A stretch of 64,000 nucleotides of DNA from Perna viridis. Taxonomy: Eukaryota. The translations under genes and the position numbers were made by a program. The stretch spans positions 11,738,699 through 11,802,698 of the forward strand of contig CM074519.1 of assembly GCA_037379345.1 (NCBI GenBank), read 5' to 3'. The notes under the pieces were generated by a model. The model ran no database searches and was not told the DNA's origin. It worked only from the letters and a program-made list of their open reading frames with translations. Shown here one piece after another: positions 1,335 to 34,339 of the stretch; the stretch's first letter is position 1; the number at the start of each line of letters is the position of its first letter.

Positions 1335-1449
1335 AGATGACTATCTAGAAATGTTTGCCCCTAGATGTGGAGGCTGTGGAAGACCTATACTAGACAACTA
1401 TATCTCAGCCCTTAGTCGACACTGGCATCCCGAGTGCTTTGTCTGTAGA
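1335..1449 (+). CDS. pxn: Paxillin, penultimate coding exon (end of LIM2, first half of LIM3)
   Basis: Acceptor ttgctttcag|, donor |gtaagt at 1450; reads [38 protein letters not shown], a paxillin LIM3 sequence; phase 0 join to the next exon. Confidence 0.95.
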
Positions 1450-1869
1450 GTAAGTATAAACAGTTGAACAATAACAATTTACTTGAGATAGTGTTTCATG
1501 AACTGTTTGTCTTATTTATTAAATGCAATCATTTGATATGGTATACCTTAAAAATACAATGTCCAATGAAGTTTCTCATAAACTGATCCATATAAGTATG
1601 TCATGCTGAGGGGTAAAAAGTATGTGATGGTGATACAGGTCCAGACATGTAATGGGTCTTGTTATGTATTAAATTTTCTCAAATGTTTGCAACATTAAAC
1701 ACAATTTTCAGTAAATCTGCTTGTGGATCAGTGACCAAAGAAAAACTGCAGAATTTGATATCTATGAATAATAACATTCATTCATTATTTGTACAAAACT
1801 CAATTATACTGAAACATATTCTGGTGTAGCAGAGGTAAAGACTTATCACAAACCAATTTTTTTTAATAG

Positions 1870-2136
1870 GACTGTGGCCAACCTTTTGGTGGAAGAAGTT
1901 TCTTTGAACATGAAGGACTACCCTATTGTGAAACTCATTACCATGCTAAGCGTGGATCACTTTGTGCCAGCTGCCAGAAGCCAATAACAGGCCGATGTAT
2001 TACAGCAATGTTTAAGAAATTTCACCCAGAACATTTCGTTTGTGCGTTTTGTCTGAAGCAGCTGAACAAAGGCACATTCAAGGAACAGAATGATAAGCCA
2101 TATTGTCACCCATGTTTTGTGAAACTGTTTGGTTAA
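1870..2136 (+). CDS. pxn: Paxillin, last coding exon (end of LIM3, LIM4, stop)
   Basis: Acceptor ttttaatag|; reads [88 protein letters not shown], the canonical paxillin-family C-terminus; TAA at 2134-2136. Confidence 0.96.
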
Positions 2137-3794: not shown

Positions 3795-3986
3795 TGGAAT
3801 TTTTTTTAGTCTTGTTTTACTCATAAAATTCAGGTAGTATGTTTACTCCGGAAGAAAACTTTATTACCCATTAGTTGTGGTCTATTGTTTTTGTTTTGTT
3901 CTTGTTTAGTGAGAAATATTTTTAGATTATTGGGATGGATGCAGGAACTTTTTAAGTAGCAGTATTTATAAAAATAAGACAGGATA

Positions 3987-6440
3987 TGATTCATGCATGT
4001 CAAAAACTCACCAAATTTAGTTTTATTTCTTATTCAGAATCAGTTACATACCACATAACCAGTCTTGGTTTTTCATTTGGATGTTGCACTTTTGACATAA
4101 AATTTATATAGATTGTACATTAAATTAGCACTTTACAAGAGTTATCGTTCTTGATTTAGGTTGAATTTAGTGGGAGATGAATGTATGATTTTCTCAAAAG
4201 TGCGGATTAGAACACAGAAAAGACTAATGTTACCTTAAGATATAGCATCTGAAGACATTATTTGTTCGGTGTGTTTTTCTACACTATGAATCACCTATAC
4301 CATAGGCAGTGTCTGAACTTTAAATGGAATGGTATATAACACAGACAGAAGCATTAACATAAAGTCTGTGTACTTACTGCTAGATATTAATCAATCTGAC
4401 AGTATACTTTTACTCGAGGAGGTCTTCTCTATTTGAAATAACGGTATTTGATTTCTGCATCACTAGATGTGTTTGGAAATTTTTCATTAAAATATAAGAC
4501 AAGTGAAGTTTTGAAAGAATTATCTGCCCCTGAATGTGTTAATTTGCAGTACATTTCAATGTTATAATGAATCATTTAATCCAAATATAGTTAATTTTGC
4601 CTCCATCCTTTGATTTTAATGATAAAAAAAGTTCAATTACACTGTTATAAAATTGTGGATTATTTTATGCAAAGTTTCACCCACTGCCTGATCCTTACAA
4701 ATGACTTTTCAGTAACCAAGCTTCCAAATCATTCAAGCAATTTTGCTGTGAATTGATATACATTTGTACCATTGAAAAAGACAAACAGAAAACCACACAA
4801 ATGCAATTTTTAATGAGAAATTTACAGGTACGTAATATTTTCTATGTAGAGAGTATCATACCCTCATGTTTTCTTTTCATGTAAACAATGGTACAGATTT
4901 ATTATTCATACCCTTATTATCCAAACTCAGAACAGTATTTATTAATATTAAAAAGGTAAAAGTACTTAATAGTAAAAATTATACTGGATATGATTAAGAA
5001 GTTTGTTTTTTTACCACTATAGAGTGTTGCATGGTTTTGTAAACCACAAAATTAAATAAAATAATTCATTTTGAAAAACAAGGTGTCATACTAGAATCAT
5101 ATTCTAAAAAATTCACCAGTCTGCTAGTACATATGTATCTATTTGAATTAAGTATAGTATTTGTAATTACATGTACATTCACAGTCAAGTCATTAATATG
5201 TATTATTTTGGTTTCATTTTACAATTTTGTGGCATGGACATTTTTTTCAAGCACTTTATATGAGTTGGAAGAAGGTAGAAGTATTAAGTCTTTTTGAAAA
5301 TCAGACTGAAGGTCATTCATGCATGTCAAAAATGCATTAAATTCAGTTTCATTTCTTGTTCAGAAAGAGTTACTGATCACATTTTCAGTCTTAGATTTCA
5401 TTTGGTTGTTGCACTTTTGAGATAAATATACATGAAATTGGCACTTTGCAAGAATTATCGTTCTTGATTTTGGTTGATTTTAGTGGGAGATAAATGTATG
5501 ATTTAATCAAAAATGCAGATCTGAATACAGAAATAACTATCCTTTTGTTAAAATATAACACATGTAGACAGAAAAAGCATCATTGGTTTGGTTGGTTTTT
5601 CTACACCATGAATCACTTTACCATTGAAAGAGTCTGAATTTTATGTGGACAGGTACTTGATATGTGTAAATTGTAGATTGTGAGATGGGCCAAATCTTCA
5701 TGTTGAAGTATTTGATTAACTATGAAAATATTGAACATAAATGTAAAATTAAGATATTTTTCATTCAGCTAAATATACAAATAAATATGCAAAATATGAA
5801 TTTAGTTTTATTTTTCACAGTGTATTAAATCTGAAGGTGTCACTTGTTACAGAGATCAGAAATTAAGTGATATTTGGTCATGAAATGAATTTTGTCCTCA
5901 TTTTAACCTCAATTTTTGGTGTTCCATGTTATATCTAGAGTTGTCTAGTCATTTAAGTGATTTTAGTTTTAGTTGGTAGTTGAGTCCTGTGCAAAAAAAA
6001 ACATAGTAAATACAAGGAAAACCATGATGTAAATGAGGGACAGGATATCCAACCAAATAGACAGTATATATCACAGTTAACTAAAACAATCCTCACAGAA
6101 ACTGAAGTATTAAAAGTATTAAGTGTTTGTAAAAATCAGGCAACATGGGAAAAACCACAAGCATGCATGTCAAAAACCTACCAATCTGACAATGAATGCT
6201 TTCTTTTCAAAAAAAACCATTATAATGATCTCTGCATCACTGGCTTTGTTCAGAATTTTTCAATAAAATCTTAGAAAAATGAGGTTTTTGACAGAGTTAT
6301 CTGCCATTGAAGTACCATCCAGCATGATATGGAAAATTTTGTCTGTTTTCCTTGATTCTGATGGTGAAAATACACAAATTAAACTATTAAAATAGTGTTT
6401 ATTTCATACAATGTTTCACCCACCGCCTGATTCTTACAGA
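3987..6440 (+). repeat. Diverged local duplications between paxillin and the DUF3987-like gene
   Basis: Block starting ttcatgcatgtcaaaaa (~3990-4340) is repeated at ~5316-5650 and partly at ~6161; block ctgcatcact...gtttcacccactgcctgatccttaca (~4455-4700) is repeated at ~6232-6440. Confidence 0.65.
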
Positions 6441-7307: not shown

Positions 7308-8586
7308 TCAGTTATTAAAGACAATTTGATTATCACAGTCATCTTGTTCCTTTTTCATCTGCATAAGTTTCAACTCGTCAAAGACAGTTGTTTCTGGGAA
7401 TGTATCTTCATATTCTTCAGGTGAAATGCGTAACCGCTTTAAAATGTCTTTACCCTTGTCTGACATTTTGGCATGTGTTTCCTTCAGAAACCGGACGGAA
7501 TGACCTCTTAGAACATGCATAGTCCCAATCTCTAAACCCTCGAGTCTTTCAAAGAATCTCGTAGCTGCCCACGATGGATGCGACGTTCGTGGCGATTTTT
7601 GTCGGAGGTCCATAGGCACTGGCGGGAACAGCCGATATTGGCAAGCATAAGAGGCGGTAACAATAGCGCCATGAGTAAGTAACAGTTTCTTTATCTTATT
7701 AGCGCATTGCTGGAAGAATATTTCATCATCTGCGTCGTAAATACAACCTTCAAATGGCGGCTGTAAGCTTTTTTGTGACGCGCGGTACACTTTCTTTGCT
7801 TTAGGCTTCTCCATGGTATTATGAGATGAATGTGGTGACGGAATGTTTGTAGAAGACGAATGTGGTGATTTGGAATGTCCATTTTGGAACCGTGGTCCCA
7901 GGCTCATTTGTGGTGGTCTCATATGCCGCGGCATTTGTGGCACAGATGGCGTAATAGGAACAAAGTATTCCATAAAGCGGTTGTCCATCTCATGGCGGTT
8001 ACTGTGCATTTGATTGCGAAATGGTTCTTCAGGTACTGGCGGTCTTAGTTGAAAGTGGTTTTTAATCAGAACCATTTCATTTTCAGGTAATGAATGACCC
8101 ATGCTATCATCAGCGTAGTCATTGTCAAAATTTTTCGATATTACATCGCTCTTTCCAGCCACGATTTTGTCAACTCGAGCATTAGGAGGTATAACCTCGA
8201 TCATTTCATCGTCGAATTCATCAGCGTAACCACCAGTCGTTGTAACGTTCATGCTCCTATCTGACTGGTTGTCGGATTCTACTGTCCAACGAGTGTTGTC
8301 GTTTTCTTCCGTCATTTCCGGCCACTCGTCGTCTGCTTTTGAAGCAAAGAGACACAACTTTTGCTGCAGAACAAATCGAACTATTTGGTAGGCTCGTTTG
8401 ACCTGGCTTCGGTCAATACTTCGAGTTGGACCATCGTCGCTTCCGTTTTTCTTATTCACACCACTGGTGAGGGCAGCCAGAATAGCGGAGAGTCTTGCCA
8501 AGTGTCCACCAGCTTGATTTATGGAACCGAAAACCATTTTGTTGTCAATATATATCCTCTTCATACGCTGGAAAATCTCGAGACAT
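7308..8586 (-). CDS. DUF3987-like (MCM-related P-loop ATPase) gene, exon 2: helical lid, low-complexity linker, putative C-terminal winged-helix-like domain
   Basis: Acceptor ttttgcatttcattcttgcag| at 8587 lies inside the 450-aa ORF; phase 2 matches the exon 1 donor (ag|a = Arg). Contains HLARLSAILAAL...SIDRSQVKRAYQIVRFV, resembling the DUF3987 C-terminal helices. 845+1279 nt = 708 codons including the stop. Confidence 0.8.
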
Positions 8587-9484
8587 CTGCAAGAATGAAA
8601 TGCAAAATGCTTATACAACATTTCTGGACGAGCTCCATGTTGGTCAAGGTCCTCATACATGTATACAAATATATCAGATATTTGTTCAGGTATTTACTTA
8701 TTGAGTATCAGTGATGGATCTAGAAATTCCAAGAGGGGAAGCTAGTTTTTTTTATTGTTTTCTATAAAATCAACCAATTAATGTGGTGGCCCTTCGGGGT
8801 CCTATTGGATATGGGTATGCATACATTGAACCATAAAGATTTTATAATCTGACTCGTCAAATCCTGAAAAAAGACCTTCAAAACTGTTTTAAGAATTGAA
8901 GATATTTCATACAGGATCTGAAACAATGAATTCTAACAACACCCTCCTTAAATGACAAAACACATGTTCAGTTCCGGAGTTGTATAGACAAGTTTCATTA
9001 ATTTATTGCCGAGTATAAGCTTGTAAATAAAGGGGAGTGGAGTCAAACTTCGACCTCGCAAACACCAAAAGGAAGCGAGGTCAAACTAAGGACTCCCAAG
9101 CAAGGTTCTGAATTGCTTACCCGGCTTAATAGGCAACATTTCATTTTTTTTGTAAAAGCAGCCATGTTTTTTTCTTGAATAAAAATTCCTAACCCTCACA
9201 CCTAAAAATCAATCGTATCAATTTTCATTGAATTCTGTCAAATTGTATCTGGGAAGAATTTTAATATAATATATATACACGTCTCAGAATGTGACGACTC
9301 TATTCGCTACACTGCTCCATCGGATCAAAATTGATACAGGGAAGATAACGTAAACTTGCAGAAGGTCTGAAAAAATCCCAACGATGTTAGAACTCGTACC
9401 GCTGTGACATCTATGGCAACACCGCCTGCACGAAGTCCAGCGCCCTAGACCACTGGGCCAAAAATTTGACCACAAATAGAAATC

Positions 9485-9785
9485 ATCAAGTTGAACATTT
9501 TTATCCCATGTCAGAATTTTCGTAAACCTTACAAATTTGGAGATATATGCGAAAAAAAAAACTTCTATCTGACCTCTGTTCTATTTTTAGTAACGGCGAT
9601 CATGTTTTTCGACTTACCAAAAATCCCCACATCAGTTAAATGCAAAATACTATAAGGAATATCCATAGCAAGTTTGGTTCTCATTGGTTAATTTTAAATT
9701 AGTGGTTTCAGATGAAAAGAGTTTTGAAAGAGCCGCTTACGGTGACGGACGACGACGGATGCCAATAGCTAACATGGCCCGAAGA
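9485..9785. mobile_element. Fragment of a bivalve-type non-autonomous Helentron/DINE-like element in the intron
   Basis: Contains caagtttggttc...agtggtttcag...gacggacgacgacggatgcc...aatagctaacatggccc, a motif succession I recognise from abundant bivalve interspersed repeats; boundaries approximate. Confidence 0.5.
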
Positions 9786-10350
9786 TGTCAAACTTCTGCC
9801 TCACTGGGAACAAAAGAGTGAGGTCAAATAACGGCCTCACAAGCATCAAAAGAGAGTGAAGTCAATTACGCACTCATGACCAAAAACGGGGAATGAGGTG
9901 AAACAACTAAAAGTAAGGTGAAACTATATCGTCAAAATAAAAAGGGGGAGTGAAGTTTAACTACGTATTCACAAGCAACAAAAGGAATGAAGTAAAATTA
10001 CGACCTCACAAACAACAAAAGGGAGTGAAGTCAAACTAGGGATTCACAAGCAATAAAAGGGAATTAAGTCAATAGACAACAACAAAGAAGAGTAAAGTCA
10101 AACAACGCGGTATGATAGTGTGGACGAACAACGGCCTCAAAGGGTACAAAGGAGTGATGTCAAATTACGACCTCACAAGTTACAAAGGAGTGATGTCAAA
10201 CTACGACCTCACAAGTTACAAAGGAGTGATGTCAAACTACAACCTCACAAGGTACAATGGAGTGATGTTAAACTACGACCTCACAAGGTACAAAGGAGTG
10301 ATGTCAAACTACGACCTCATAAGGTACAAATGAGTGATGTCAAACTACTA
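9785..10350. repeat. 36-39 bp minisatellite (caaaggagtgatgtcaaactacgacctcacaagtta)
   Basis: About 5.5 near-identical 36-bp units at ~10147-10350, increasingly degenerate units back to ~9785, and two further units at ~9030-9102. Confidence 0.9.
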
Positions 10351-11889
10351 CCATTCAGGCAACAGCAACATCTATATTCCGCAAACTTAAAGCCTACGTG
10401 TAGTATGAAAGACACTGCTCGATGTGTTATGTCATACACCCGTAAATGTACGGTACTACTTCGCCTACTCAAGTAATGCTACAGGTTGTCTTGCACAGCA
10501 AACTACTTTCTACTACCACAGAACTCCAAGCTCTTACGTTGTAGGACCAGGCTTCATTTTAATATTTGCTAAAAGACTTTTGGGGAACAGTCTTTTCAGA
10601 ACCCAATAAAAGTCCGTCTAATTAGAATTAGACGCATATTTCTACTTCTTTTTTCCGCAAAAAAAATAAAAATCAGAGAGGCTAGTTTCGAGTACAGTGT
10701 TACCCGCCACGTTAAAATTGTTCGTATCATTTTAGTGTTTATATACTAAACTTTGGCATCTATTTACAAAGCATCTTTGCGAATCCAATATTTCATTAAA
10801 TTGTAGTTTTATCAATTATGATCAAAGTTAAAAACGTAAAAGAGAGTAAATGAAAAATATTTCTTCAACATAAAAACAGGTAGACTCTTAAAGATCTAAT
10901 TGCGCATAACAAGAAAAATAAAATTTAAAAATCGAAAAAGACCTAGTTTAAGAAAAGTTATTGAAGATTTTGAGGTGTAATTTAAGTCTAGAACGAACAA
11001 GCTATAAGCTACATGTATGCATTTCTTAAGGTCATTAAAATATTTGGAACAGTTTCAATTATACCATCTCAAATTCGCCTTGACAAAGAGAAATACACTT
11101 GATTTTAATTGTTCATATGATACATTTTCATTTACGTGTAGCACCATCTTCCGGAATAGCACTTCATACGATGTCAACTAACCTCAATTTGTGCTATGGT
11201 GAAGAACCAATTATGGTATTTTTACAGTTTGGTACTTTCTTAGGTCACGGTGTAAAAAGGGGGGGTGTTGTAATGGCACATTTTTTTTCATAGCATTATT
11301 CAATAAAGTTTTGTATTCTGCTTTAAGACGCACCGTTTAACCCCCTTTTGCAAATCTATAAGTAAAAAACATTTTAAAGCCATATAAACGCTCATATCCA
11401 GCAAACAATCAAAATGATAATGCATATTCGTAAATTTGCGGATTACCCCTGAGAATAAGGATCCGAAAATTGTTTAGTAATAGTGTATAGTCCTATGTAA
11501 TAATACTAGCTAATTCGTTGTGTATTTAATCGACTGTTTAAAATATACATAAACTTCATTCACAGTCCTACACAAAAGATAAAGCTCTTATTTATCAGGG
11601 TATAGCGGATTAAACTCACAAATCTTAATTCCTTATATAGCAATCAATAATTTGACCGTAGTAAAAATACCGAATTGAATTTAAAATCCACCTTACCAGT
11701 ATTTGGATATAGCGACGGATAAAAATGCGAGGTTAGCAGCCGATATAAAGGTTTTTTTACCATTTTAATGGTCTATAAAATCAAAATTCAACAAAGCATG
11801 CAGCCACTCGTTCAAAAGAGACGGTGCATTTCAAAGATTCTTCGTATTCGTCCGCTAGTTTATCTTAAACGCAAACGGTATATATGTAC

Positions 11890-12734
11890 CTGGTTAATTC
11901 TTTCTGACCACTCGAATCAAAACTATATGTCTGGTCTCTCGGTAAACTGTGGCAATCTCGAATCGTAGACAATATTCCTTGCATAGAATTGGAATCAACT
12001 GGCCCGTCTTTTGATGTTTCTGGGGAGTTCTTACAACAGACGATCAAAGATCTGTCAAACATTGCAATACGATTTCTGTTTTCAAAAATGGAATGAACGT
12101 CAAGAGCTTGAACTGTTCCGAGAAAATTAAAACGTCTTCTTAGCTCGTTTTCTAAACCACATCCATAAAGTTCCTTGAGCTTCGAGTTTATGAAAATATC
12201 CATGGAATGTTCCAAACTATCTACAGTTTCTTTAAAGTCGTCTATAACTATCAAGGGGCTTCCATTGCAATCATGCAAAGTTTTCTGTAAATCCGACTTA
12301 ATATTGTACTCATCAATTATTTGGACCGGGGCAGAATTCTGTGTTTTGTCATTTTCCTCGCTTGATGTTTCTGTGTCATCAACGTGTCTAGTGTCTAATG
12401 CAACACAAATTTGTTTCATCTTCTGTAAAGCGCATGTTTTTCGTTCTCCCCGCCTTGCAACAAGCAAACACATGAGTGAAACAGGTTCTGTCCAATCAGC
12501 ATCGATCTTTACAGTTGCCATGGTTCCCATGAAATGAGCAGCAGAAGCCAACAGTGGGAACACAACAAGTTCTTCAGCACAAGACAACTCTTCACATTGT
12601 GACATCACAAGTTTATAAACTTCTGCATCTAAAATATATTTCCATTCAACTTTCACATCTTGCGATTCTTTAAATCTTTTTAAGTCATCCATTTCTCGAA
12701 TCTCTTGTATAGACGTGTTTTTACTGCACGACAT
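11890..12734 (-). CDS. DUF3987-like (MCM-related P-loop ATPase) gene, exon 1
   Basis: ATG at 12734, donor ccag|gtacat at 11889. Motifs in order: WTEPVSLMCLLVARRGERKT (Walker A-like), LIVIDD (Walker B-like), LKELYG, FNFLGTVQ, MFDRSLIV. Family assigned by motif recognition, not by a search. Confidence 0.78.
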
Positions 12735-13906
12735 CTTTAACGTCTTATCTCGAATAGCACATATGGTAAATGTTAATTTCTAGTCCAAAGATTTCATGGT
12801 GACAAGCATTCGCTACACAATCAAAAATGGCGTTGACGAACTGCTGTGAACTTTGTTTAAGTATATACATGTCTACTCTTATCGCATTCTAATCTCGATA
12901 AATAGCTTTATATATCAAAATAGTGTAGCTGACCCATTTACGTGAAGCAGACGATAGTTCTAAGTCCGCGCTACACAAAGTCTAATCTACGTGCTAAATT
13001 TAAACCTCCCTGTCTAGTCAACCAGCACAAATACTTGTACACCAAACCTTTTTCGGATGTTTTATGTTATGTATATATGTAAATAGCTATATAGGTAAAA
13101 CATACACTGTATTGCTATATTCATTTTAACACGCTTTGTGCTATTTCGTCTAACAGTTCATAAACCATGTACTTCAACATAAAAGACATGTTCATGTCAT
13201 AATAGGGGGTTTAAAGATGTACATTTATCGTCTGTACGATATATTTGAAATGAATATTTTTTTTATTCTGAACATGATTTATGTCATCATTATAAATACA
13301 AGTTTTTTTTTGTTTTTTTTTGTTTTTTTGTTTTTTATATATATATATAGCTATTTCTGGGTGATGATACACTCTAATGCGTTCAGCAACAGGTTAACCT
13401 GTCCAATCCACAATATCCTTATCATGGAAAGTTTATACGCATTATTTCTGTGTTGGTTTATACAGGACCTCATATACAAACAATTTCATGGACGGAAGAC
13501 TTCGGGATATTGTTTAAACATTCATTTTTCACTTTAGTCAGGTAACGCTCAAAGTATACATAGCATTATTTATAACAAGATATTTGAATCTTAATAAGCT
13601 CTGTAACAATTTATGCGTTGAACTACCCGGTCAAACAAAGTTAGTCGGCCTGTTCGAATGCCTACCTCCTCATGCAAGTATGAATGCATTAATAGATGTA
13701 TAAAGGAGGGTCCTCTAGTCTGAATTTGGAATATGGATAAATTCAACCCATCTTAGTAACATGCACCTATTGCGTGTATATTGAGTAATCAAGATTCTAG
13801 CGGAAATCAAAAGAATGTAATCCAGGGACAAAGACCAGACATGAAAAACTGACGAGTTCTATGTTGTGTTTGTTGGTAGTTTCTGTTCCATTTTGATCTT
13901 ATATTT

Positions 13907-15246: not shown

Positions 15247-16040
15247 ATCGCCGACCACGAAGTGGAGGTGACGTATTGTTTCTAATGTGTTTCTTCTTCT
15301 TCTTCTTCTTATTATTATTATTATTATTATTATTATTCTGCTGTCATAAAAAGTGTTGACAGTGTTCGCCCTTTTTCACTAAAGTGGCCAGTCCGACTGA
15401 GATGAGTTAGAACTACTCTTCGAAGGATGGAGAACTTCAAAAACAATTGTTGAAAATTGGAGATATGAGATATCTGATGCTCCAATTTTCAAATTGCCGA
15501 TCAGAATTTGACCAAAGTTGATATATATATTCAGCTCAATGGACCAAACAAAATTCTGAAAAAAAAATCGCGTGCGTCTCGGCCTTTTTTCAAAATGGCC
15601 GCCAACGCGATCGAAAATTCAAATTTGTCCGATTTTGATGAAAATTATTATCTAGTTTCTTTGAGTCGTCCCGATAAACAAACTGTGGCTCAATCGGCAA
15701 TTTAAACTACGTATCGGCCGCCAGTTTGAAAGTGGCCGCCACTGCGATCGAAAATTTTAATTTGTCCGATTTTGATGAAAATTAATATCTAGGTTTTTGA
15801 AGTCATCCCGATCAAGAATCTACAGCTCAATCGATAATTTGAACTGTGTATCCACCGCCATTTTAAAAAATGGCCGCCACCGCGATGAAAAATTCAAAGT
15901 TGTTCGCTTTCGACGAAATTGGGTATCCAGGTTCTTTGCGCTGCCTCGATTAATAATAAAAAGTTCATCTGGCGATATGTTTCTCAAAAGACCGATGAGG
16001 AAATGGGAGGCGACTTCGACATGTTTTTATGGAAACGTAA
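15247..16040 (+). mobile_element. Non-autonomous Helentron-like (HINE/DINE-1-type) element with internal tandem repeats
   Basis: 5' tcgcc, a ccac-gaa-gtgg hairpin, a (TTC)n(TTA)n microsatellite at ~15290-15338, three ~137-138 bp repeats marked by tggccgcc (near 15595, 15732, 15870), and 3' ggcga at ~16009; more CpG-rich than the flanks. Confidence 0.7.
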
Positions 16041-25371: not shown

Positions 25372-25503
25372 ACAATGTGAATGTGACCACAACAATACCT
25401 AGGGAGACTATATACAATGTGAATGTGACCATAACAATACCTAGGGAGACTATATACAATGAGAATGTGACCATAACAACACCTAGGGAGACTATATACA
25501 ATG
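25372..25503. repeat. 42-bp tandem repeat x3 in a Musashi intron
   Basis: acaatgtgaatgtgaccayaacaatacctagggagactatat starting at 25372, 25414 and 25456. Confidence 0.92.
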
Positions 25504-25518
25504 ATTAGTAAATCTTAC

Positions 25519-25694
25519 AGCTAGGCTGTGTCCCAGGCTGAGGGCTGTTGGTTGGGGACTGGTTGCCTGGAGATACAGACTGTCCTGGCTGTTGTAGATA
25601 TCCAAGGGACCAGGGCTGTTAGCCAGTGGTAGTCCTCGACTTGGTGAGGTAGTTGCGGGAAAGGCAGCTTGTGCCCCAATTCCATTCAGCATGG
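25519..25694 (-). CDS. msi: Musashi/Rbp6 exon (AMLNGIGAQAAFPATTSPSRGLPLANSPGPLDIYNSQDSLYLQATSPQPTALSLGHSLA)
   Basis: Acceptor ttttattgtag|, donor |gtaaga; phase 1 to 0; ANSPGP..D.Y and YLQATSPQP are conserved Musashi C-terminal motifs. Confidence 0.92.
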
Positions 25695-26361
25695 CTACAA
25701 TAAAAAAATTTATTTTAATAATACTTAAAGTTTATAATTCCTGGTTAGTTGCTCTTTCACAATATGTAACAAGACATAAAATGCTTTTCGTTCTAATTCT
25801 GAGTTTAACATGACTTTTACGATCTCTATAGAACAATTAATGAAACAAGACTTAATAAAATCTTAATCACATAGATTATAGTACATTTATACACACTGGA
25901 CTTGTAGCTTTAAAACTGGTTACCAGTATATATGTTCAATTTACAATACCAACTTAAGTTGTCCTTCTTTGTATTGAAAATGTTTATCCACCTTCAAACA
26001 ATGTGTTTGTATACTAGTTCTACAAGTACGATATATCCTACCTGCTGTCACAAATACTTAATATGAACTAGTCTTTGAATTCCCGAAAAGTTATTTCTGT
26101 CATCTTGTCGGATTCCATTACATAATTTTTATTTCATGTTCTTTTATGTGTACGCTGAAAAATTTGTCTTCTTGTGGGTGATTTTATTGATTAATATTTC
26201 AATGTTGTACCCAATGTTTTCAATCCTGCTTGGATTTTAATTCCTAACATTGGTACAAGTTTCATGTTCTTTTTTTTCTGTTTGTATTTCATCTTGAGGT
26301 TCAAGTTGGGAAATTTTTGTTTTCATTTTTTCGGGTTTTCTGTCATTAGATCCCCTCATAC

Positions 26362-26601
26362 CTGAGAGTCCTTGTGCACGCTGTGCATTAATCAGCTGTT
26401 CACTGACGCGTTGTAATGGAGAAGTAGTCATTGTATTTGGTTGTGGAGACGGCTCGCTACGTTGAATCTGTAATCCCCCTGCTGTCAGCTGACTAGTTTG
26501 GGCAGCACCTAGATCAGTAGCGTAAATGGCCGTTGGTGAGGCATGGCGATCACCGGCAGGGGAGGGGGCAGCAAGATAACTTGTGGTATAACCAGGGAAG
26601 C
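26362..26601 (-). CDS. msi: Musashi/Rbp6 exon, 240 nt (GFPGYTTSYLAAPSPAG...AQRAQGLS)
   Basis: Acceptor ctctcttattcag|, donor cag|gtatga; phase 1-1, open frame, A/P/S/T-rich. Confidence 0.85.
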
Positions 26602-29289
26602 CTGAATAAGAGAGAATATTTCTCCTTAACATTTGTGACCTCTTACAAGCATAGGAAATGTCAAATATAAAATACCATGTAGAATTTAAAGGACCTCCAT
26701 CTAATTTTATTATCCCTTATCCTCTAGAATGTAAACATTTACATACTATTAGTATACATAAAAGAAAATTTTAAATTTTTTTTCAGATGTCTAAAACTAA
26801 TTTTTGGAATAATTTTTAAGATAACTACAGACTCAATCTATACCAATATAAATTGTTCAAAATTGTAGAAATTACATTTAGTAAATTTCTGGATAAATGG
26901 TATTTTTTTTATCCTTTTTGTATTTGATGGAGTCCCTTTTGATTCATGTATAAATATGAATTTATAATTGATGGTTACCATCGTTATAAAAATAATTGCA
27001 CATTCCTATACTTTCCAGACATATCTCATCCCACCATGGCATTCCAAATGTAAAACTTTGACAAAACCACCATGGTTCCCAATCTTAGATTGTCGGAACA
27101 GTCATTATGGCTTTCCAAACTTAAATATTTGGCAAATGCAAGATATGGGAGAGAAATGTCAAATAATATATTCAGACTTGGCTTCCCTGGTTTTGCATGA
27201 ACAAGAATAAAACAAGCACACAACAAAAGGTCAGCTATATATATACATCAGATCAATTCAAGCTCTCTAACTACCAAGATTTCTAAGCTTTTCCTATATT
27301 TGGCTAACATCAAAATTAGCATTCCAATTTAGTAACTTTCCTTGCTATTATCTATCTATCAGTATTTCTTATGATTAGATATGGCTACAAAACATATATG
27401 TTAGTTTTTTGTTCTATTTTTATATTTTAAATAATAAAACTGCCGAAAGTGAAAAATCTACAGTATAAAAATTAAGAACTAAAGTTTCGTTAAGTCAGTA
27501 TTGTTACATGCAAAACACTACCAAAAGCATAACTAATGACTAATGAAAATAAAAACATCGAATTCTATAAAGCAGAATTTCATTGATATCTTTCCGTGTG
27601 TGCTTGGTTTTCTACAGTTGCATGCAAAATCAGCGGAGCCAGAATCACTTCAAGGTCATATTATCAAAGTTCAAAGGTCAAATCATCAAAGACAACAATT
27701 CAATCAAAGCTGTAAAAAACATGCATAATTATTGCATCCAATGAACAGAGCTGTTTTGTTTTTTTATATGAAAGGTTTAGGTCAAAGACAGGAGACATTT
27801 CTATAAGACAGAGTTGTCTCCCTTGCCTTATGTTCTCTGCTTCTCGTTAGTAGATGTAATCACAGAATCACATTTAACTTTTCTTACTATCCTGCAGCTG
27901 AAATAAATTTCAAACATTCACAGGAACTGTTCAAGTTCAATTTGAAAATTCAAATGAAAAAAGGTATCAATTGTTTCAATGATTCCATAATATCTTTCTT
28001 ATTTTATTCAAATATCACTTGAAATCTTGTGTAGCACTTTGAAGTATTTTCTTTTTTGTTACTCTAGATCTAGATATCACTTCTCATGAAATATTTTGCA
28101 TGGTGAAACTTAATATGACTGCAGAGGCCAAACCCTGAATACAAATTTTCAGTCATATAAATATTAACTATCTTAGACTTTTCTATAAAAATCATCAGCC
28201 CTGTTCATTGGTAAATTGATTAATAAGATTATATAACTACATCAATGGTGAAGGTTTCAGACAAATTATGGCCCATGTTTCACAAAGATAATTTTGACAT
28301 CTATCTACATATACAAATCAAGCAAGCCCTCCATCAATCCATGTTGAAATGTATACAGCCATTCTTGATAGAAAAAAAAATGTGTAACAAATATTTTCTT
28401 GATAACGGTCAATTCTATACTCAAATTTCTATTATTTTGTATCTAAAATTATTAAATATTTTTTATTAATCATGAAAATTTAAAGGTGTAATCATTTTTC
28501 TCAACAAGAACATTTCAACACATGATTAATCAAAAATTACAAACAATAAAAAAAAATACACAGCCAACCAGTTATCATAAAAAGTTTGACAAAATTTTGT
28601 TGATAAGTGTCAAAAATGGGAGAATCCAGCTGCACTTTCAACCTTCAACATGGAATGATAAAACAAGTTGACAAATTGTAGATTAAGTAACTATCACATT
28701 CATAACAAACATATACACATATCTATAATCAGCTACACAATAATATCTGAATACCACACATATGCAAATACAATATAATAACTACAGACTAAAGAACTTT
28801 AGCTTCACTGCAATTTTCATTTTTCTCTTTCTGTTGATTTCAAAAAGTCACACTCTAAACTAATTACATTTAACATGGACATATCTTGTTCTTGTTTCAA
28901 TAATGTCACATTTGAAATATTGTTTTCGTAAATTACACAGTTTTATAAAAAGATACAAAATTCATTGTCAAAATTCTTAAAAGTAAAATATTTTTAAAAC
29001 TTATTACTAGGAAAATCCCTACAGGAAGAAAATAGAAAATAAACAGTGAATTAAAAACTAAGCAAGTGTTATAATTTTCACAGCTACTTTTAAAATAGTA
29101 CATAGTTATCTTGCTAGCAGAGAAGGGGAATAACTCTGTAAGGGTATTTAACTCCACAATATGTACGAGAGAAAATACGAAAAACAATACAAATAAACTC
29201 ACAAAATACACTTTTTTATACTATTGAATGCTGGGAAAAATAAGCTTAAGCAACAGAGTAACACTAGGTGGCGCAGCATTGGTGCTTAC

Positions 29290-31435: not shown

Positions 31436-33419
31436 GAATTTTTTAAGTAACACGTACATTGTACAAAATACAAATGGCAAAACACGATACAAAGTTGTTT
31501 ACACTGAATATTACAATACATTAAGTCAACAACATTATATATTTCGATATGAATTATTCAAGATTTGATAAAAATTGCATATTTTGAAATCAACAGTATA
31601 TATTCAACAAACAAATTTACCATTTCAGCTCATTTCATAACAAAGTTTTGTCAACTGAAAACCCTCCGAACATTGAACAGGCAACTCTATTTTCCCAGGC
31701 AATGGTTACCCAAATGGCAAATTTGTTGTATCAAATTAATATAAGAATAAAATATCACATTTATAAAGGGCAGTCTCCACCATTATTTTTTTCTTACATT
31801 TATCTATTTATTTAAATTTAGATTATGACATTTTTTAAAACAAAATAAAGTTTGATTAATTGTTTTTAAATTCTAGGTACATGTATAAATTATTTATTTT
31901 TAAAACCAAGAATTATTCAGTATAAAGAATTAATTTCTTAAAAAATAAATTAATAAGAGATTTTTTTTGATTTTTCAAATGCTGCATATAATTAATATGA
32001 AATGATTCTGATAAATCATGCTGGCGGAGACAGACCCATTAAAACACATAAACCAATAAGATATGGTTCTCTTCAAAATTTAATACTGAAAAATTCTGTT
32101 AAAATATCACATCTATAGGATAAAAATGACCTGACTCAAAACCCATAAAACGTAAAATAAAGGCACTGATTGTAAAACAACAAAATGACTTAATATTGCT
32201 TCTGTTTTTATCTGATAAAATATTATATTTTTAGTTTTGACTTGGTCTGGTAATGCTGGAATTTTAATCATATTTTTAACTCAATTTAGCTCAATATTTC
32301 ATATTTTATATAATTAAAGCATTATTTCAATATTCCTCAAGATAAGAGGGGCCTTTTTTAATATTTAATTTTTCACAAGTTAATATTTCCAAAACTTCTT
32401 ATTCTTAACATTAAATCATATTTCATAATTCTTATTGCATTATTTTAGAAGGTCTGGAGTGATATTATGGCTCAGCTCTCATTAATATTGTATTACTGTA
32501 TAATCTCATTTGGTTTAGATAGTCTAAATAAAATGTTAAATTATTTAAAATAAAAGAAAAAGAAATTGACACCAAAATAATTCAATTATAATTTGAGGTA
32601 GTTTTCTATTCGCCATTAGTATTTATTAATATTTTATAATCATAGAATTTATTGCTTCAATTTCATCACCTAAAATTTCAATAACTATTTATTAAAATAA
32701 TTATATGATAAATTAAATTCTTAAAAACAAAAATAATTTAATTCAATCTAATTCTGCTGATTTGCTATCTATAAAGTTTATATTAATGCTAAAACAAAGC
32801 TAATTTTCAAATAAATAAATTAATTAATAAATAAGTACGTATTTGCTAATATATTACACAGAGTTATATATAATATAAAATAAATAATACTATATTTTTA
32901 CATATATCTAGTTTGCAAATGCTAGGTCAGTATTTATTCAAATTAAGTGTTTTGAAAAAAATATCGCCTTAATCTTAATATTTTAATACGTCCTAGTTCT
33001 GAAATGATATGGTCAATAACAGATAAAAAAAATCACTGCTTACATAAAGGGGGTGTTCTATTTTACATTTGGCAAGAATTTCAATCATTATATACAAATA
33101 CAAAAAACATGAATTTTTTAGATGAATGTAAATTTTGTCAACAGAAACAAATTCATTTGAATTTTTCACCCAACAACAATAATTGACACAGAGTATGAGA
33201 CAATAATATGTTCAATAAATGCTGTTAATATCGGTAAATTTTCACATTTTTACATCAACACTTTCAATCTTCATCTTGTCATGTCATCCATATTTAGTTT
33301 CACTTCTGTTCATAAAATTGTGCCATGTAGCAGTTCTACTTGGAACATCTCAGGCCTGGCTGAAAACAACTGAGGAGTTTAGAAGGGATACCACTGCCCT
33401 AATTCTAATATTTCCATAC

Positions 33420-33509
33420 CTGGTGGGTAATAATAGCCAGCTGGTGCAAGAGTCGGGAAACCACGTCCATAAGGAGAATACATAGCTGGGATAGTCCCTG
33501 GAAGCAGAC
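33420..33509 (-). CDS. msi: Musashi/Rbp6 exon, 90 nt (GLLPGTIPAMYSPYGRGFPTLAPAGYYYPP)
   Basis: Acceptor ttctctttgctgcag|, donor cag|gtatgg; phase 1-1; YGRG(F/Y)P..AP..Y resembles the Musashi post-RRM segment. Confidence 0.88.
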
Positions 33510-34339
33510 CTGCAGCAAAGAGAAACAAACACTTTATTTGTTTATTAAGAGTCATGTAATTCTTCCCACAATTCAAAAAATATATTTCAAAGTTAATACA
33601 CAAAAATATAATTGCAAATGAGGTAAGTTTGTATTAATGTTGTGTAGCAGGAAACAGCAGTTTTTTTTTTAAACAAATATCAAAAAAAAAAACTTCTATT
33701 TATAAATATCTTGCATTGAAAAAAATTTATCCATCATACAATCAACATAGAAATTATGCACTGAAAAAAAAAATACTGTGACATGCACTTTTCATATTTT
33801 TAAGTAAAGCCACAAAGAAGTAGATGAAAGTGACTATTGTTACTCATTAAACATGTTATATAATCAGGTTTTCAAAGTTGTCTTATTACAGTTTAATGTA
33901 GAATTTGGAAGGCCGGTTCAACCTTGAATCTTGGACGAATTTTCTTCTTGCTTTCTCTGTGCAAACATGCAGAACACTAATGGAAAAAAATACATCTAAA
34001 ACATCTACATTTCTACAGCTATAAATAACAGTACCAATAAATCTTAAGCATGCAAAACTTCTAAGTTCAACAGCAAAAAGGATAGGAGCAGATGGCGTGA
34101 ATGGAAAAATAACAAATTTCATTAAAATATTTCATTTGAGAAAGCAAACGAATTAATTAAAAAGTAGAGAGAAAGATATTAAAGTAATGCATCACAATTT
34201 GAAGTTCTTTTTGTCAACATATTAACATGCTGGTGAAAAGTCGTGAACTTAACCAGCACAAAGAAACCAAAACTGGATCAAAATCAGACAGCACTCAGTC
34301 AATCTGTAGAAAGATCACATGACCAGGGAAAAGACTTAC

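Follow-up and report, generated by a model that had tools for sequence, protein, structure and literature searches.

A DUF3987 ATPase gene with a conserved spliceosomal intron is inherited vertically in molluscs

The 64-kb window, by which we mean the whole stretch of DNA analysed, contains an intact two-exon gene for a 707-aa DUF3987 protein. The position of its intron, the gene tree and the pattern of selection together indicate vertical inheritance within molluscs from a time before gastropods and bivalves separated, and today the gene belongs to no mobile element. Phages, plasmids and integrative elements are the typical carriers of DUF3987 proteins (PMC4889955, PMC5862659), and one bacterial member is an ATP-dependent 5'-3' helicase whose activity depends on both Walker motifs, A and B (PMC11724360). 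In a survey of dsDNA viruses, DUF3987 helicases were noted as absent from eukaryotic viruses (PMC4889955). Within the literature mentioning DUF3987 we found no paper on an animal member, in agreement with the initial annotation of this DNA, which knew of no described function for animal homologues.

Gene structure and splicing

Two ORFs on the minus strand (11865-12734, 289 aa, and 7308-8660, 450 aa) are much longer than any other in the window; the next-longest within the whole 64 kb is 131 aa. Exon 1 ends in ...ACCAG at 11890 and is followed by GTACAT, and the intron ends in ...TTCTTGCAG at 8587, the first base of exon 2 being 8586. Positions 11889 and 8587 are therefore the first and last bases of the intron, which splits an Arg codon as AG/A in phase 2. 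The coding length is 845 + 1279 = 2124 nt, or 707 codons plus the stop.

The evidence for splicing comes from orthologues, as no spliced transcript of the window's own species was found. The orthologue P0003 (698 aa) is encoded by an unbroken ORF on a 2263-nt contig and bridges the junction with no residue missing or extra: exon 1 aligns up to R282, equivalent to P0003 R275, and exon 2 starts at R25 of its ORF, equivalent to the same R275. Exon 1 (aa 1-282) is 62% identical to both P0003 and a second orthologue, P0006. In a sister species, the transcript-like contig L013 is collinear with the genomic contig L010 only from the junction onward, where L010 carries a polypyrimidine-AG acceptor, and the 90% cluster of P0006 brings together a 695-aa form from a transcript and a 395-aa, exon-2-only form from genomic DNA. 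The gene is thus a genuine two-exon nuclear gene of a mollusc, probably a bivalve, with a GT-AG phase-2 splice, and the in-frame joining of the two ORFs that had been proposed from the sequence is correct. Conservation extends into the 5' leader (Table 1), and is not neutral there because synonymous sites between these species are saturated.

Table 1. Features of the locus, in window coordinates
Feature	Position	Strand	Basis
LIM-domain exons of paxillin-like 3' end	1351-1467, 2008-2136	+	ORF
Candidate polyadenylation hexamers after stop	start 7134, 7124, 7078	-	
Stop codon	7308..7310	-	ORF
C-terminal globular domain, 155 aa, predicted winged-helix-like, most conserved part of protein	7311..7775	-	AF2 model, dN/dS, identity
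Predicted disordered linker, about 180 aa	7776..8315	-	Orthologue pLDDT <50
Acidic-flanked hydrophobic linker motif DDEMIEVI	8190-8213	-	Alignment A1
Exon 2 start: helical lid of AAA+ module (GGHLARLSAIL...QQKL)	8316..8586	-	Pfam, hhalign to YfjI, confident helices in orthologue model
Intron, 3303 nt, GT...AG, phase 2	8587..11889	-	Splice sites; same position and phase in four other molluscs
Tandem array of 36-38-nt units inside intron	about 9022-10368		Repeat analysis
Exon 1 coding: N-terminal helical segment and AAA+ core of DUF3987 domain; ATG 12734, 281 codons + 2 nt	11890..12734	-	ORF, Pfam, orthologue identity
R228 in MFDRSL, candidate arginine finger	12051..12053	-	Arg in most family members and YfjI FFARCL
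Walker B strand L161-D166, LIVIDD	12237..12254	-	hhalign pairs DD with YfjI DE
P-loop (Walker A) A93-T100, ARRGERKT	12435..12458	-	Alignment to YfjI AESGERKS
5' leader / promoter-proximal region	12735..12904	-	Upstream region aligned with 5' ends of L001 and L013
Second tiny uORF	12745-12762	-	Sequence reading
Conserved upstream ATG with 5-codon uORF	12780-12797	-	Upstream alignment, sequence reading
19-nt block invariant in three species	12824-12842	-	Alignment with transcript-like contigs L001 and L013

Membership of the DUF3987 family

All searches took the two exons as separate queries. Residues 54-135 of exon 1 match positions 4-85 of the Pfam DUF3987 profile (PF13148) with an E-value of 3e-6, marginal at 27.1 bits against a cutoff of 27, and residues 47-105 of exon 2 supply the C-terminus of the profile (positions 313-362, E 0.008), the two matches being collinear. 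P0006 scores 43 bits against PF13148, and all 21 rows of the family alignment A1 match it (best E 2.4e-30). Profile-profile alignment of A1 to E. coli YfjI with hhalign covers 281 columns with a probability of 96.6% and an E-value of 6.7e-10. The full-length structure model used here is that of the natural orthologue P0006, not of the window protein; a Foldseek search of this AlphaFold model against BFVD gave 44 matches with E-values no higher than 1e-3, the best being 7.2e-14, named as DUF3987 proteins, helicases or prim-pol/helicase fusions of phages. Pfam, the alignment to YfjI and the fold thus confirm the window protein as a DUF3987 member, and the motifs by which the initial annotation recognised the family are present and conserved.

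The protein shares its Pfam family with phage and plasmid helicases such as YfjI, from E. coli CP4-57, and AgaPH (a PriCT-DUF3987 helicase). Its likeness to YfjI extends to a collinear profile alignment over about 280 columns, the GE.K[ST] P-loop, the position of the Walker B acidic pair, a QP/QA strand and a conserved Arg, and the predicted fold of the mollusc orthologue resembles phage DUF3987 proteins with an E-value of 7e-14. Unlike its phage and plasmid relatives, the mollusc gene resides in an animal host with a spliceosomal intron and outside any mobile element, and its product lacks a fused or adjacent primase/PriCT domain and has about 180 aa of predicted disorder inserted ahead of the C-terminal domain. 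The DUF927 Cch helicase of staphylococcal SCCmec and the VirE ATPases are likewise MCM-like or AAA+ ATPases tied to primases in mobile elements (PMC5862659), but they form separate Pfam families with no match to the mollusc protein.

ATPase motifs and relation to MCM

P-loop residues G96 and K99 show almost no variation within the family, and the following Thr/Ser is also conserved. The non-Gly residue before the Lys is family-typical and does not reflect decay, because the aligned residues of YfjI read AESGERKS. Of the two Walker B acids, the first is kept (IDD in the window, SDE in YfjI). At the second position the window and most bivalves have Asp, and Solemya, Haliotis and Pinctada have Asn (motif table); every molluscan clade-A member has DD or DN where YfjI has DE, and the residue varies among D, N and E across animals. 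Loss of the catalytic Glu makes efficient ATP hydrolysis, and hence motor activity, doubtful, although Asp can sometimes replace Glu. R228 is a candidate arginine finger, a role that we presume by analogy with the SRFD motif of MCM.

The closest solved structures to the mollusc AAA+ core are MCM2-7 and archaeal MCM of SF6. About 50 top matches were listed when the P0006 model was searched against the PDB with Foldseek, and all were MCM chains bar one clamp-loader (7z6h_F); the MCM matches span about 400 columns at about 10% identity, with E-values from 2.2e-4 and a probability of about 1.0. Further points of likeness are the non-canonical P-loop with a non-Gly residue before the Lys, an Arg in an R-F/L-hydrophobic motif and a predicted winged-helix-like domain at the C-terminus. 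In contrast, neither exon matches the Pfam MCM profile (PF00493) at E up to 1, no PDB chain was matched by sequence or family profile, and the P0006 model has no OB-fold/zinc N-terminal domain, its N-terminus of about 70 aa being helical (H9-69). As judged by secondary structure only, this model also has no clear helix-2 insert, helix 2 (144-153) being uninterrupted, and no clear pre-sensor-1 hairpin, the stretch between the Walker B and sensor-1 strands consisting of two helices and a low-confidence loop. The fold and the literature (PMC4889955) support the proposed relationship to MCM-type AAA+ proteins, and the structural comparisons suggested in the initial annotation have yielded both phage DUF3987 helicases and MCM chains.

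Linker and C-terminal domain

Residues 374-542 of P0006, the equivalent of the linker, have pLDDT <50. Within this region the motif DDEMIEVI is conserved as DDVIEI in other bivalves (A1). The C-terminal domain, modelled with AF2 from the window's own sequence (exon 2 aa 296-450), has a pLDDT of 87, and its best PDB fold matches are all winged-helix proteins, with weak E-values of 0.02-0.17. No alignment of the YfjI C-terminus to this domain was obtained with hhalign. Identity to the orthologue P0002 is 97% over the C-terminal domain, compared with 82% over the whole of exon 2.

Conservation, phylogeny and selection

The intron occupies the same codon and phase 2 in the window, Argopecten, Tegillarca, Solemya and Haliotis. 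It is absent from the Sinanodonta clade-B paralogue, Lineus and Ptychodera, the homologue of the last being intronless. The maximum-likelihood tree contains two deep clades, both present in molluscs, and its molluscan part is congruent with the species tree, the gastropod Haliotis being sister to the bivalves (support 87/82). Relatives occur in nemerteans, a hemichordate, Limulus (Chelicerata) and a charophyte. Matching clusters at E <1e-3 number 67 representatives among 1.84 billion, with none from well-sampled groups such as vertebrates, insects, nematodes, fungi or land plants. Orthologues lie on chromosome-scale assemblies of six animals, each annotated one at one place. No prokaryotic or viral donor lineage was identified, and tblastn against 50,697 phage records gave no match.

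Selection is strongly purifying, with dN/dS of about 0.06 overall and saturated synonymous sites between the compared species. By region, dN/dS is about 0.1 for exon 1 (the ATPase core), about 0.065 for exon 2, 0.15 for the linker and 0.009 for the C-terminal domain. Shared synteny failed to appear: neighbours differ between species, and none is shared within 10 kb of the orthologues.

Genomic neighbourhood

The gene had been placed between paxillin and Musashi. Paxillin-like LIM-domain host exons do lie 5 kb from it, but the whole window lacks an RRM RNP motif, and none of the low-complexity ORFs at 25492-26632 (minus strand) matched a Pfam family. There is a single copy of the gene in the window, and neither TIRs nor LTRs bracket it; the sole repeats spanning the locus are AT-rich matches of 25-42 nt at the level of chance. 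Pfam finds no primase domain in either exon, no other ORF exceeds 131 aa in the 64 kb, and the flanking ORFs consist of LIM exons and low-complexity stretches, with no transposase, integrase, polymerase or capsid ORF in the window. The lack of mobile-element genes and terminal repeats noted initially therefore holds. G+C content is roughly 35-39% over 6-14 kb, compared with 25-35% elsewhere in this AT-rich window.

Origin and function

Taken as a whole, the results are probably best explained by a vertically inherited host gene of ancient mobile origin whose product would act on DNA as a ring-forming ATPase. The domesticated character suggested for the gene at the outset is upheld by the intron shared among bivalves and a gastropod, the congruent tree and purifying selection. 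We infer a mobile-element or horizontal origin from the distribution of the family in the literature, which is otherwise confined to prokaryotic mobile elements. A replicative helicase gene would have been captured from a prokaryotic-type mobile element or virus before the gastropod/bivalve split and would have lost its primase partner. No primase or other replication partner lies nearby, which counts against the explanation as a whole. The protein would combine a DUF3987-type AAA+ module of the phage/plasmid MCM-like SF6 branch with a helical lid, the disordered linker and a winged-helix-like C-terminus. Like its phage relatives it may form a ring oligomer that binds ATP with the conserved Lys/Thr of the P-loop and an Arg supplied in trans; this oligomer would act on DNA, possibly with helicase activity retained. 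Tethering to DNA or to partner proteins may be provided by the winged-helix-like domain together with short linear motifs of the linker.

The main functional alternative, possible but rather doubtful, is that the AAA+ fold and nucleotide binding were kept while the helicase motor was lost, leaving a protein that works, with ATP bound, as a switch, loader or scaffold and contacts DNA or partners by means of its winged-helix-like C-terminal domain and linker motifs. The Walker B position occupied by D or N in all clade-A molluscs and by D, N or E across animals, as opposed to DE in the bacterial relative, favours this idea, as does the location of the strongest constraint (dN/dS 0.009) in the C-terminal domain and not in the ATPase. 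Against it stand the occasional ability of Asp to take the place of Glu, the purifying selection on the ATPase core and the conservation of the candidate Arg finger, of the first acid in Walker B and of Gly, Lys and Thr/Ser in the P-loop. With regard to origin, a gene already present in the eukaryotic or bilaterian ancestor and lost many times since, with no capture, is unlikely: two deep clades that both occur in molluscs, and members in Mollusca, Nemertea, Hemichordata, Chelicerata and a charophyte, speak for it, but so few matching clusters, none from the well-sampled groups named above, tailed-phage proteins as nearest fold relatives and the absence of reported members from eukaryotic viruses or cells (PMC4889955) speak against it.

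An element or endogenous virus that is still or was recently active, its remainder unrecognised, is very improbable. The typical hosts of DUF3987 (PMC4889955, PMC5862659), the patchy animal distribution, the intronless Ptychodera homologue and the differing neighbours would suit such an element, but an intron that five molluscan lineages share at one position and in one phase, the congruent tree, the single copy in the window, free of terminal repeats and element genes, and strong purifying selection with saturated synonymous sites largely refute it for molluscan clade A. Bacterial or phage contamination of the assembly, or a decaying pseudogene, has a negligible likelihood. The otherwise prokaryotic or viral family and an exon 1 Pfam score only at threshold would be expected under this reading, which is refuted by the 3.3-kb spliceosomal GT-AG intron, orthologues on chromosome-scale assemblies of six animals, an intact 707-codon frame and dN/dS of about 0.06; G+C only slightly above the rest of the window, adjacent LIM-domain exons and the unmatched phage records point the same way.

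Twinkle, a mitochondrial helicase that arose from a T7 gp4-like phage primase-helicase, offers a parallel: a replicative helicase of phage type became fixed among the host genes of eukaryotes, and its primase function was lost or decayed. Twinkle is an SF4, RecA-like and mitochondrially targeted protein, whereas the mollusc protein has an acidic N-terminus with no obvious presequence and a patchy, lineage-restricted distribution. As a tentative extension of the host-gene reading, the protein of molluscs and, patchily, of other invertebrates might be a second such case: a phage/plasmid SF6 replicative helicase captured more than 500 million years ago and turned into a nuclear genome-maintenance or antiviral factor. 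It would have shed its primase, acquired a disordered linker carrying SUMO-interaction-like motifs and retained the winged-helix domain on that tether, and its ATPase would have been retuned from a motor to a slow switch (Walker B DE to DD/DN).

Descriptions of DUF3987 helicases have so far been limited to replication proteins from phages, plasmids, satellites and integrative elements. Here a member of this family is an ordinary spliced animal gene, with an intron kept across molluscan classes and under strong selection, and so provides a clean case, open to dating, in which animals probably recruited a replication motor of prokaryotic type. For annotators, it is a warning that DUF3987 matches in invertebrate assemblies are not to be equated with contamination, and it supplies a concrete protein with which to look for a new function in the DNA metabolism or defence of invertebrates.

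Structure and splicing of the gene

The gene spans two minus-strand ORFs, of 289 and 450 aa, that exceed all others in the window; across the 64 kb the third longest reaches 131 aa. Exon 1 ends in ...ACCAG and is followed by GTACAT, and the intron closes with a pyrimidine-rich tract and a terminal ...TTCTTGCAG. Joined at these sites, exon 1 (845 nt) and exon 2 (1279 nt, stop included) give 2124 nt, or 707 codons plus stop, with an Arg codon split AG/A in phase 2. The in-frame junction proposed in the initial annotation (11889/8587) is thus borne out by its splice sites, and it is also borne out by two orthologues. In P0003, a 698-aa protein encoded continuously on a 2263-nt contig (L001), the exon 1 alignment ends at residue 275 and the exon 2 alignment begins at the same residue. 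In a sister species, the transcript-like contig L013, whose ORF encodes the 695-aa orthologue P0006, matches the genomic contig L010 at 99.8% identity only from the junction onward, where L010 reads ...ttttactttcag and the transcript reads ...ACCAG/ATGCC. The 90%-identity cluster of P0006 contains 695-aa forms together with exon-2-only forms of 395 aa. A tandem array within the window intron accounts for spurious plus-strand ORFs.

The 5' leader is conserved among species whose synonymous sites are saturated, and a 19-nt block within it, AGTTCGTCAACGCCATTTT, is invariant in three species. The block contains a CGCCATnTT core, which we take to resemble a YY1-type site. An upstream ATG is also conserved and opens a uORF of 3-5 codons. 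The conserved block and uORF suggest that the gene may be under transcriptional or translational control.

Coordinates of features in and around the DUF3987 gene
Feature	Position	Strand	Remarks
LIM-domain exon	1351-1467	+	Pfam E 1e-8
LIM-domain exon	2008-2136	+	Pfam E 1.7e-11; terminates ...KLFG-stop
Duplicate, ~330 nt	3961-4294, 5287-5616		77-94% identity, 1.3 kb apart
Exon 2 ORF	7308-8660	-	450 aa
Linker motif DDEMIEVI	8190-8213	-	DDVIEI in other bivalves
Intron 3' end	8587	-
Intron tandem array	9022-10368		36-38-nt units
Spurious ORFs	10112-10476	+
Exon 1 ORF	11865-12734	-	289 aa
Exon 1 3' end	11890	-
5' leader	12780-12904	-
uORF	12780-12797	-
19-nt leader block	12824-12842	-
137-nt tandem repeat	15588-15999		about 2.6-3 copies (TRF, 79% matches)
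Ser/Pro/Gly-rich ORFs	25492-25692, 26237-26632, 33379-33603	-	Musashi candidates of the initial annotation

Family membership and predicted fold

The window exons were used singly as queries, and the full-length fold was taken from the natural orthologue P0006. The Pfam profile of DUF3987 is matched collinearly by the two exons: residues 54-135 of exon 1 align with its positions 4-85 (E 3e-6, scoring at the gathering threshold) and residues 47-105 of exon 2 with its positions 313-362 (E 0.008). PF13148 is also matched by 21/21 rows of the family alignment (best E 2.4e-30), and the family profile aligns with YfjI, a protein of the E.coli CP4-57 prophage, over 281 columns (probability 96.6%, E 6.7e-10). 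Assignment to DUF3987, made at first from motifs, therefore stands. Sequence searches of the PDB with both exons and the family profile gave no match, and PHROGs and NCBIfam gave only chance-level matches.

The AlphaFold2 model of P0006 is confident at residues 10-370 and 550-665, and residues 374-542 are predicted to be disordered. Foldseek matches this model to tailed-phage DUF3987 helicases and primase-polymerase/helicase fusions among viral models (to E 7e-14). Against the PDB, the top ~50 matches listed, from E 2.2e-4, are MCM subunits with one exception, the clamp-loader chain 7z6h_F, which supports the MCM relation. These matches accord with the literature, which describes DUF3987 as distantly related to MCM (SF6), carrying a wHTH at the C-terminus and usually linked to primases (PMC4889955, PMC5862659), and which records ATP-dependent 5'-3' helicase activity for one member, AgaPH (PMC11724360).

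The P-loop reads ARRGERKT in the window. We considered this an animal-specific degenerate Walker A and dropped the idea because the aligned residues of YfjI are AESGERKS, which makes ARRGERKT an MCM-like P-loop typical of the family. In Walker B the strand reads LIVIDD, with a residue pair that is DE in YfjI, DD in most bivalves and DN in Solemya, Haliotis and Pinctada. The Arg conserved between MFDRSL (window) and FFARCL (YfjI) is likely the arginine finger.

The window protein ends in 155 aa that are confidently folded in the model (pLDDT 87); the best matches of this C-terminal domain, all weak (E 0.02-0.17), belong to the MarR, HlyU, PadR and eS10 kinds of winged-helix protein. A region search with this domain returned close kin only and revealed no other context for it. 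The predicted disordered linker is variable except for a conserved hydrophobic motif with acidic flanks, DDEMIEVI, which we take to resemble a SUMO-interaction motif.

Distribution and conservation

A complete HMMER scan of 1.84 billion representatives, with exon 1 as the query, found only 67 clusters at E < 1e-3. Named members come from bivalves (Tegillarca, Argopecten, Potamilus, Sinanodonta, Solemya and Pinctada), a gastropod (Haliotis), nemerteans (Lineus and Tubulanus), a hemichordate (Ptychodera), Limulus and the charophyte Klebsormidium, and all are annotated as uncharacterised. A word-indexed profile search contributed Limulus alone and returned no prokaryotes. The literature searched contains no mention of DUF3987 or PF13148 in an animal.

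Annotated orthologues were placed on their own loci, and intron positions were compared by alignment column and phase. Five molluscan lineages have the intron at the identical column and phase (2/1), in the codon preceding a conserved Cys: AG/A in the window, AA/G in Argopecten, AG/T in Tegillarca, AG/G in Solemya and AG/A in Haliotis. The Sinanodonta clade-B paralogue and the Lineus gene have introns at other positions, and the Ptychodera gene has none. In the maximum-likelihood tree of the exon 1 part, Haliotis falls outside all bivalves, the window included (support 87/82), and other phyla fall in a second clade. The window terminal branch is 0.45 vs 0.11-0.14 in its three closest relatives, three to four times longer, indicating faster evolution of the ATPase part in this lineage.

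Nei-Gojobori dN/dS, computed exon by exon with synonymous sites near or past saturation, is about 0.1 for exon 1 and 0.065 for exon 2, the latter against a relative with 83% identity; by part, it is 0.056 in the lid, 0.15 in the linker and 0.009 in the C-terminal domain.

Genomic neighbourhood

The gene had been placed between paxillin and Musashi. The paxillin side is supported: the two LIM exons belong to the 3' end of a convergent, paxillin-like gene, which ends 5 kb from the DUF3987 gene. Downstream of that paxillin-like gene, the ~330-nt duplicate probably represents a repeat of the short interspersed or MITE-like kind. The Musashi side is unsupported: a scan of the whole window for RRM RNP motifs found none and the Ser/Pro/Gly-rich candidates match no Pfam family; if these ORFs are Musashi, only its C-terminal exons are in the window. 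No paxillin or Musashi pieces were found within 10 kb of six orthologues. As initially noted, the window has no bracketing repeats around the gene and no other long ORF that might encode a primase or transposase.

Origin and function

Judged from sequence, the DUF3987 gene belongs to the host, as first proposed, and is functional and long established there. An active mobile element is rejected by the conserved position and phase of the intron, the tree, the single copy in the window and the lack of bracketing repeats there. Contamination or a pseudogene is likewise rejected, given the GT-AG intron, nearby LIM exons, low dN/dS and the failure of exon 1 to match any of 50,697 phage records by tblastn. 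Neither this search nor the word-indexed profile search found a donor lineage. Since members of DUF3987 otherwise typify prokaryotic mobile elements, the molluscan gene is most economically explained by an ancient capture; an ancestral origin we consider unlikely.

We favor a product that would form oligomers, bind ATP and act on DNA as an AAA+ protein with a tethered winged-helix domain. Given the DD/DN Walker B pair, a role as slow switch or loader seriously rivals that of a processive helicase.

The second deep eukaryotic DUF3987 clade includes a unionid mussel paralogue, from Sinanodonta (L015), and the genes of Lineus (L007) and Ptychodera (L008), with different intron positions or none, as well as the charophyte member from Klebsormidium (P0057). 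This clade bears on whether eukaryotes acquired DUF3987 by one capture or several.
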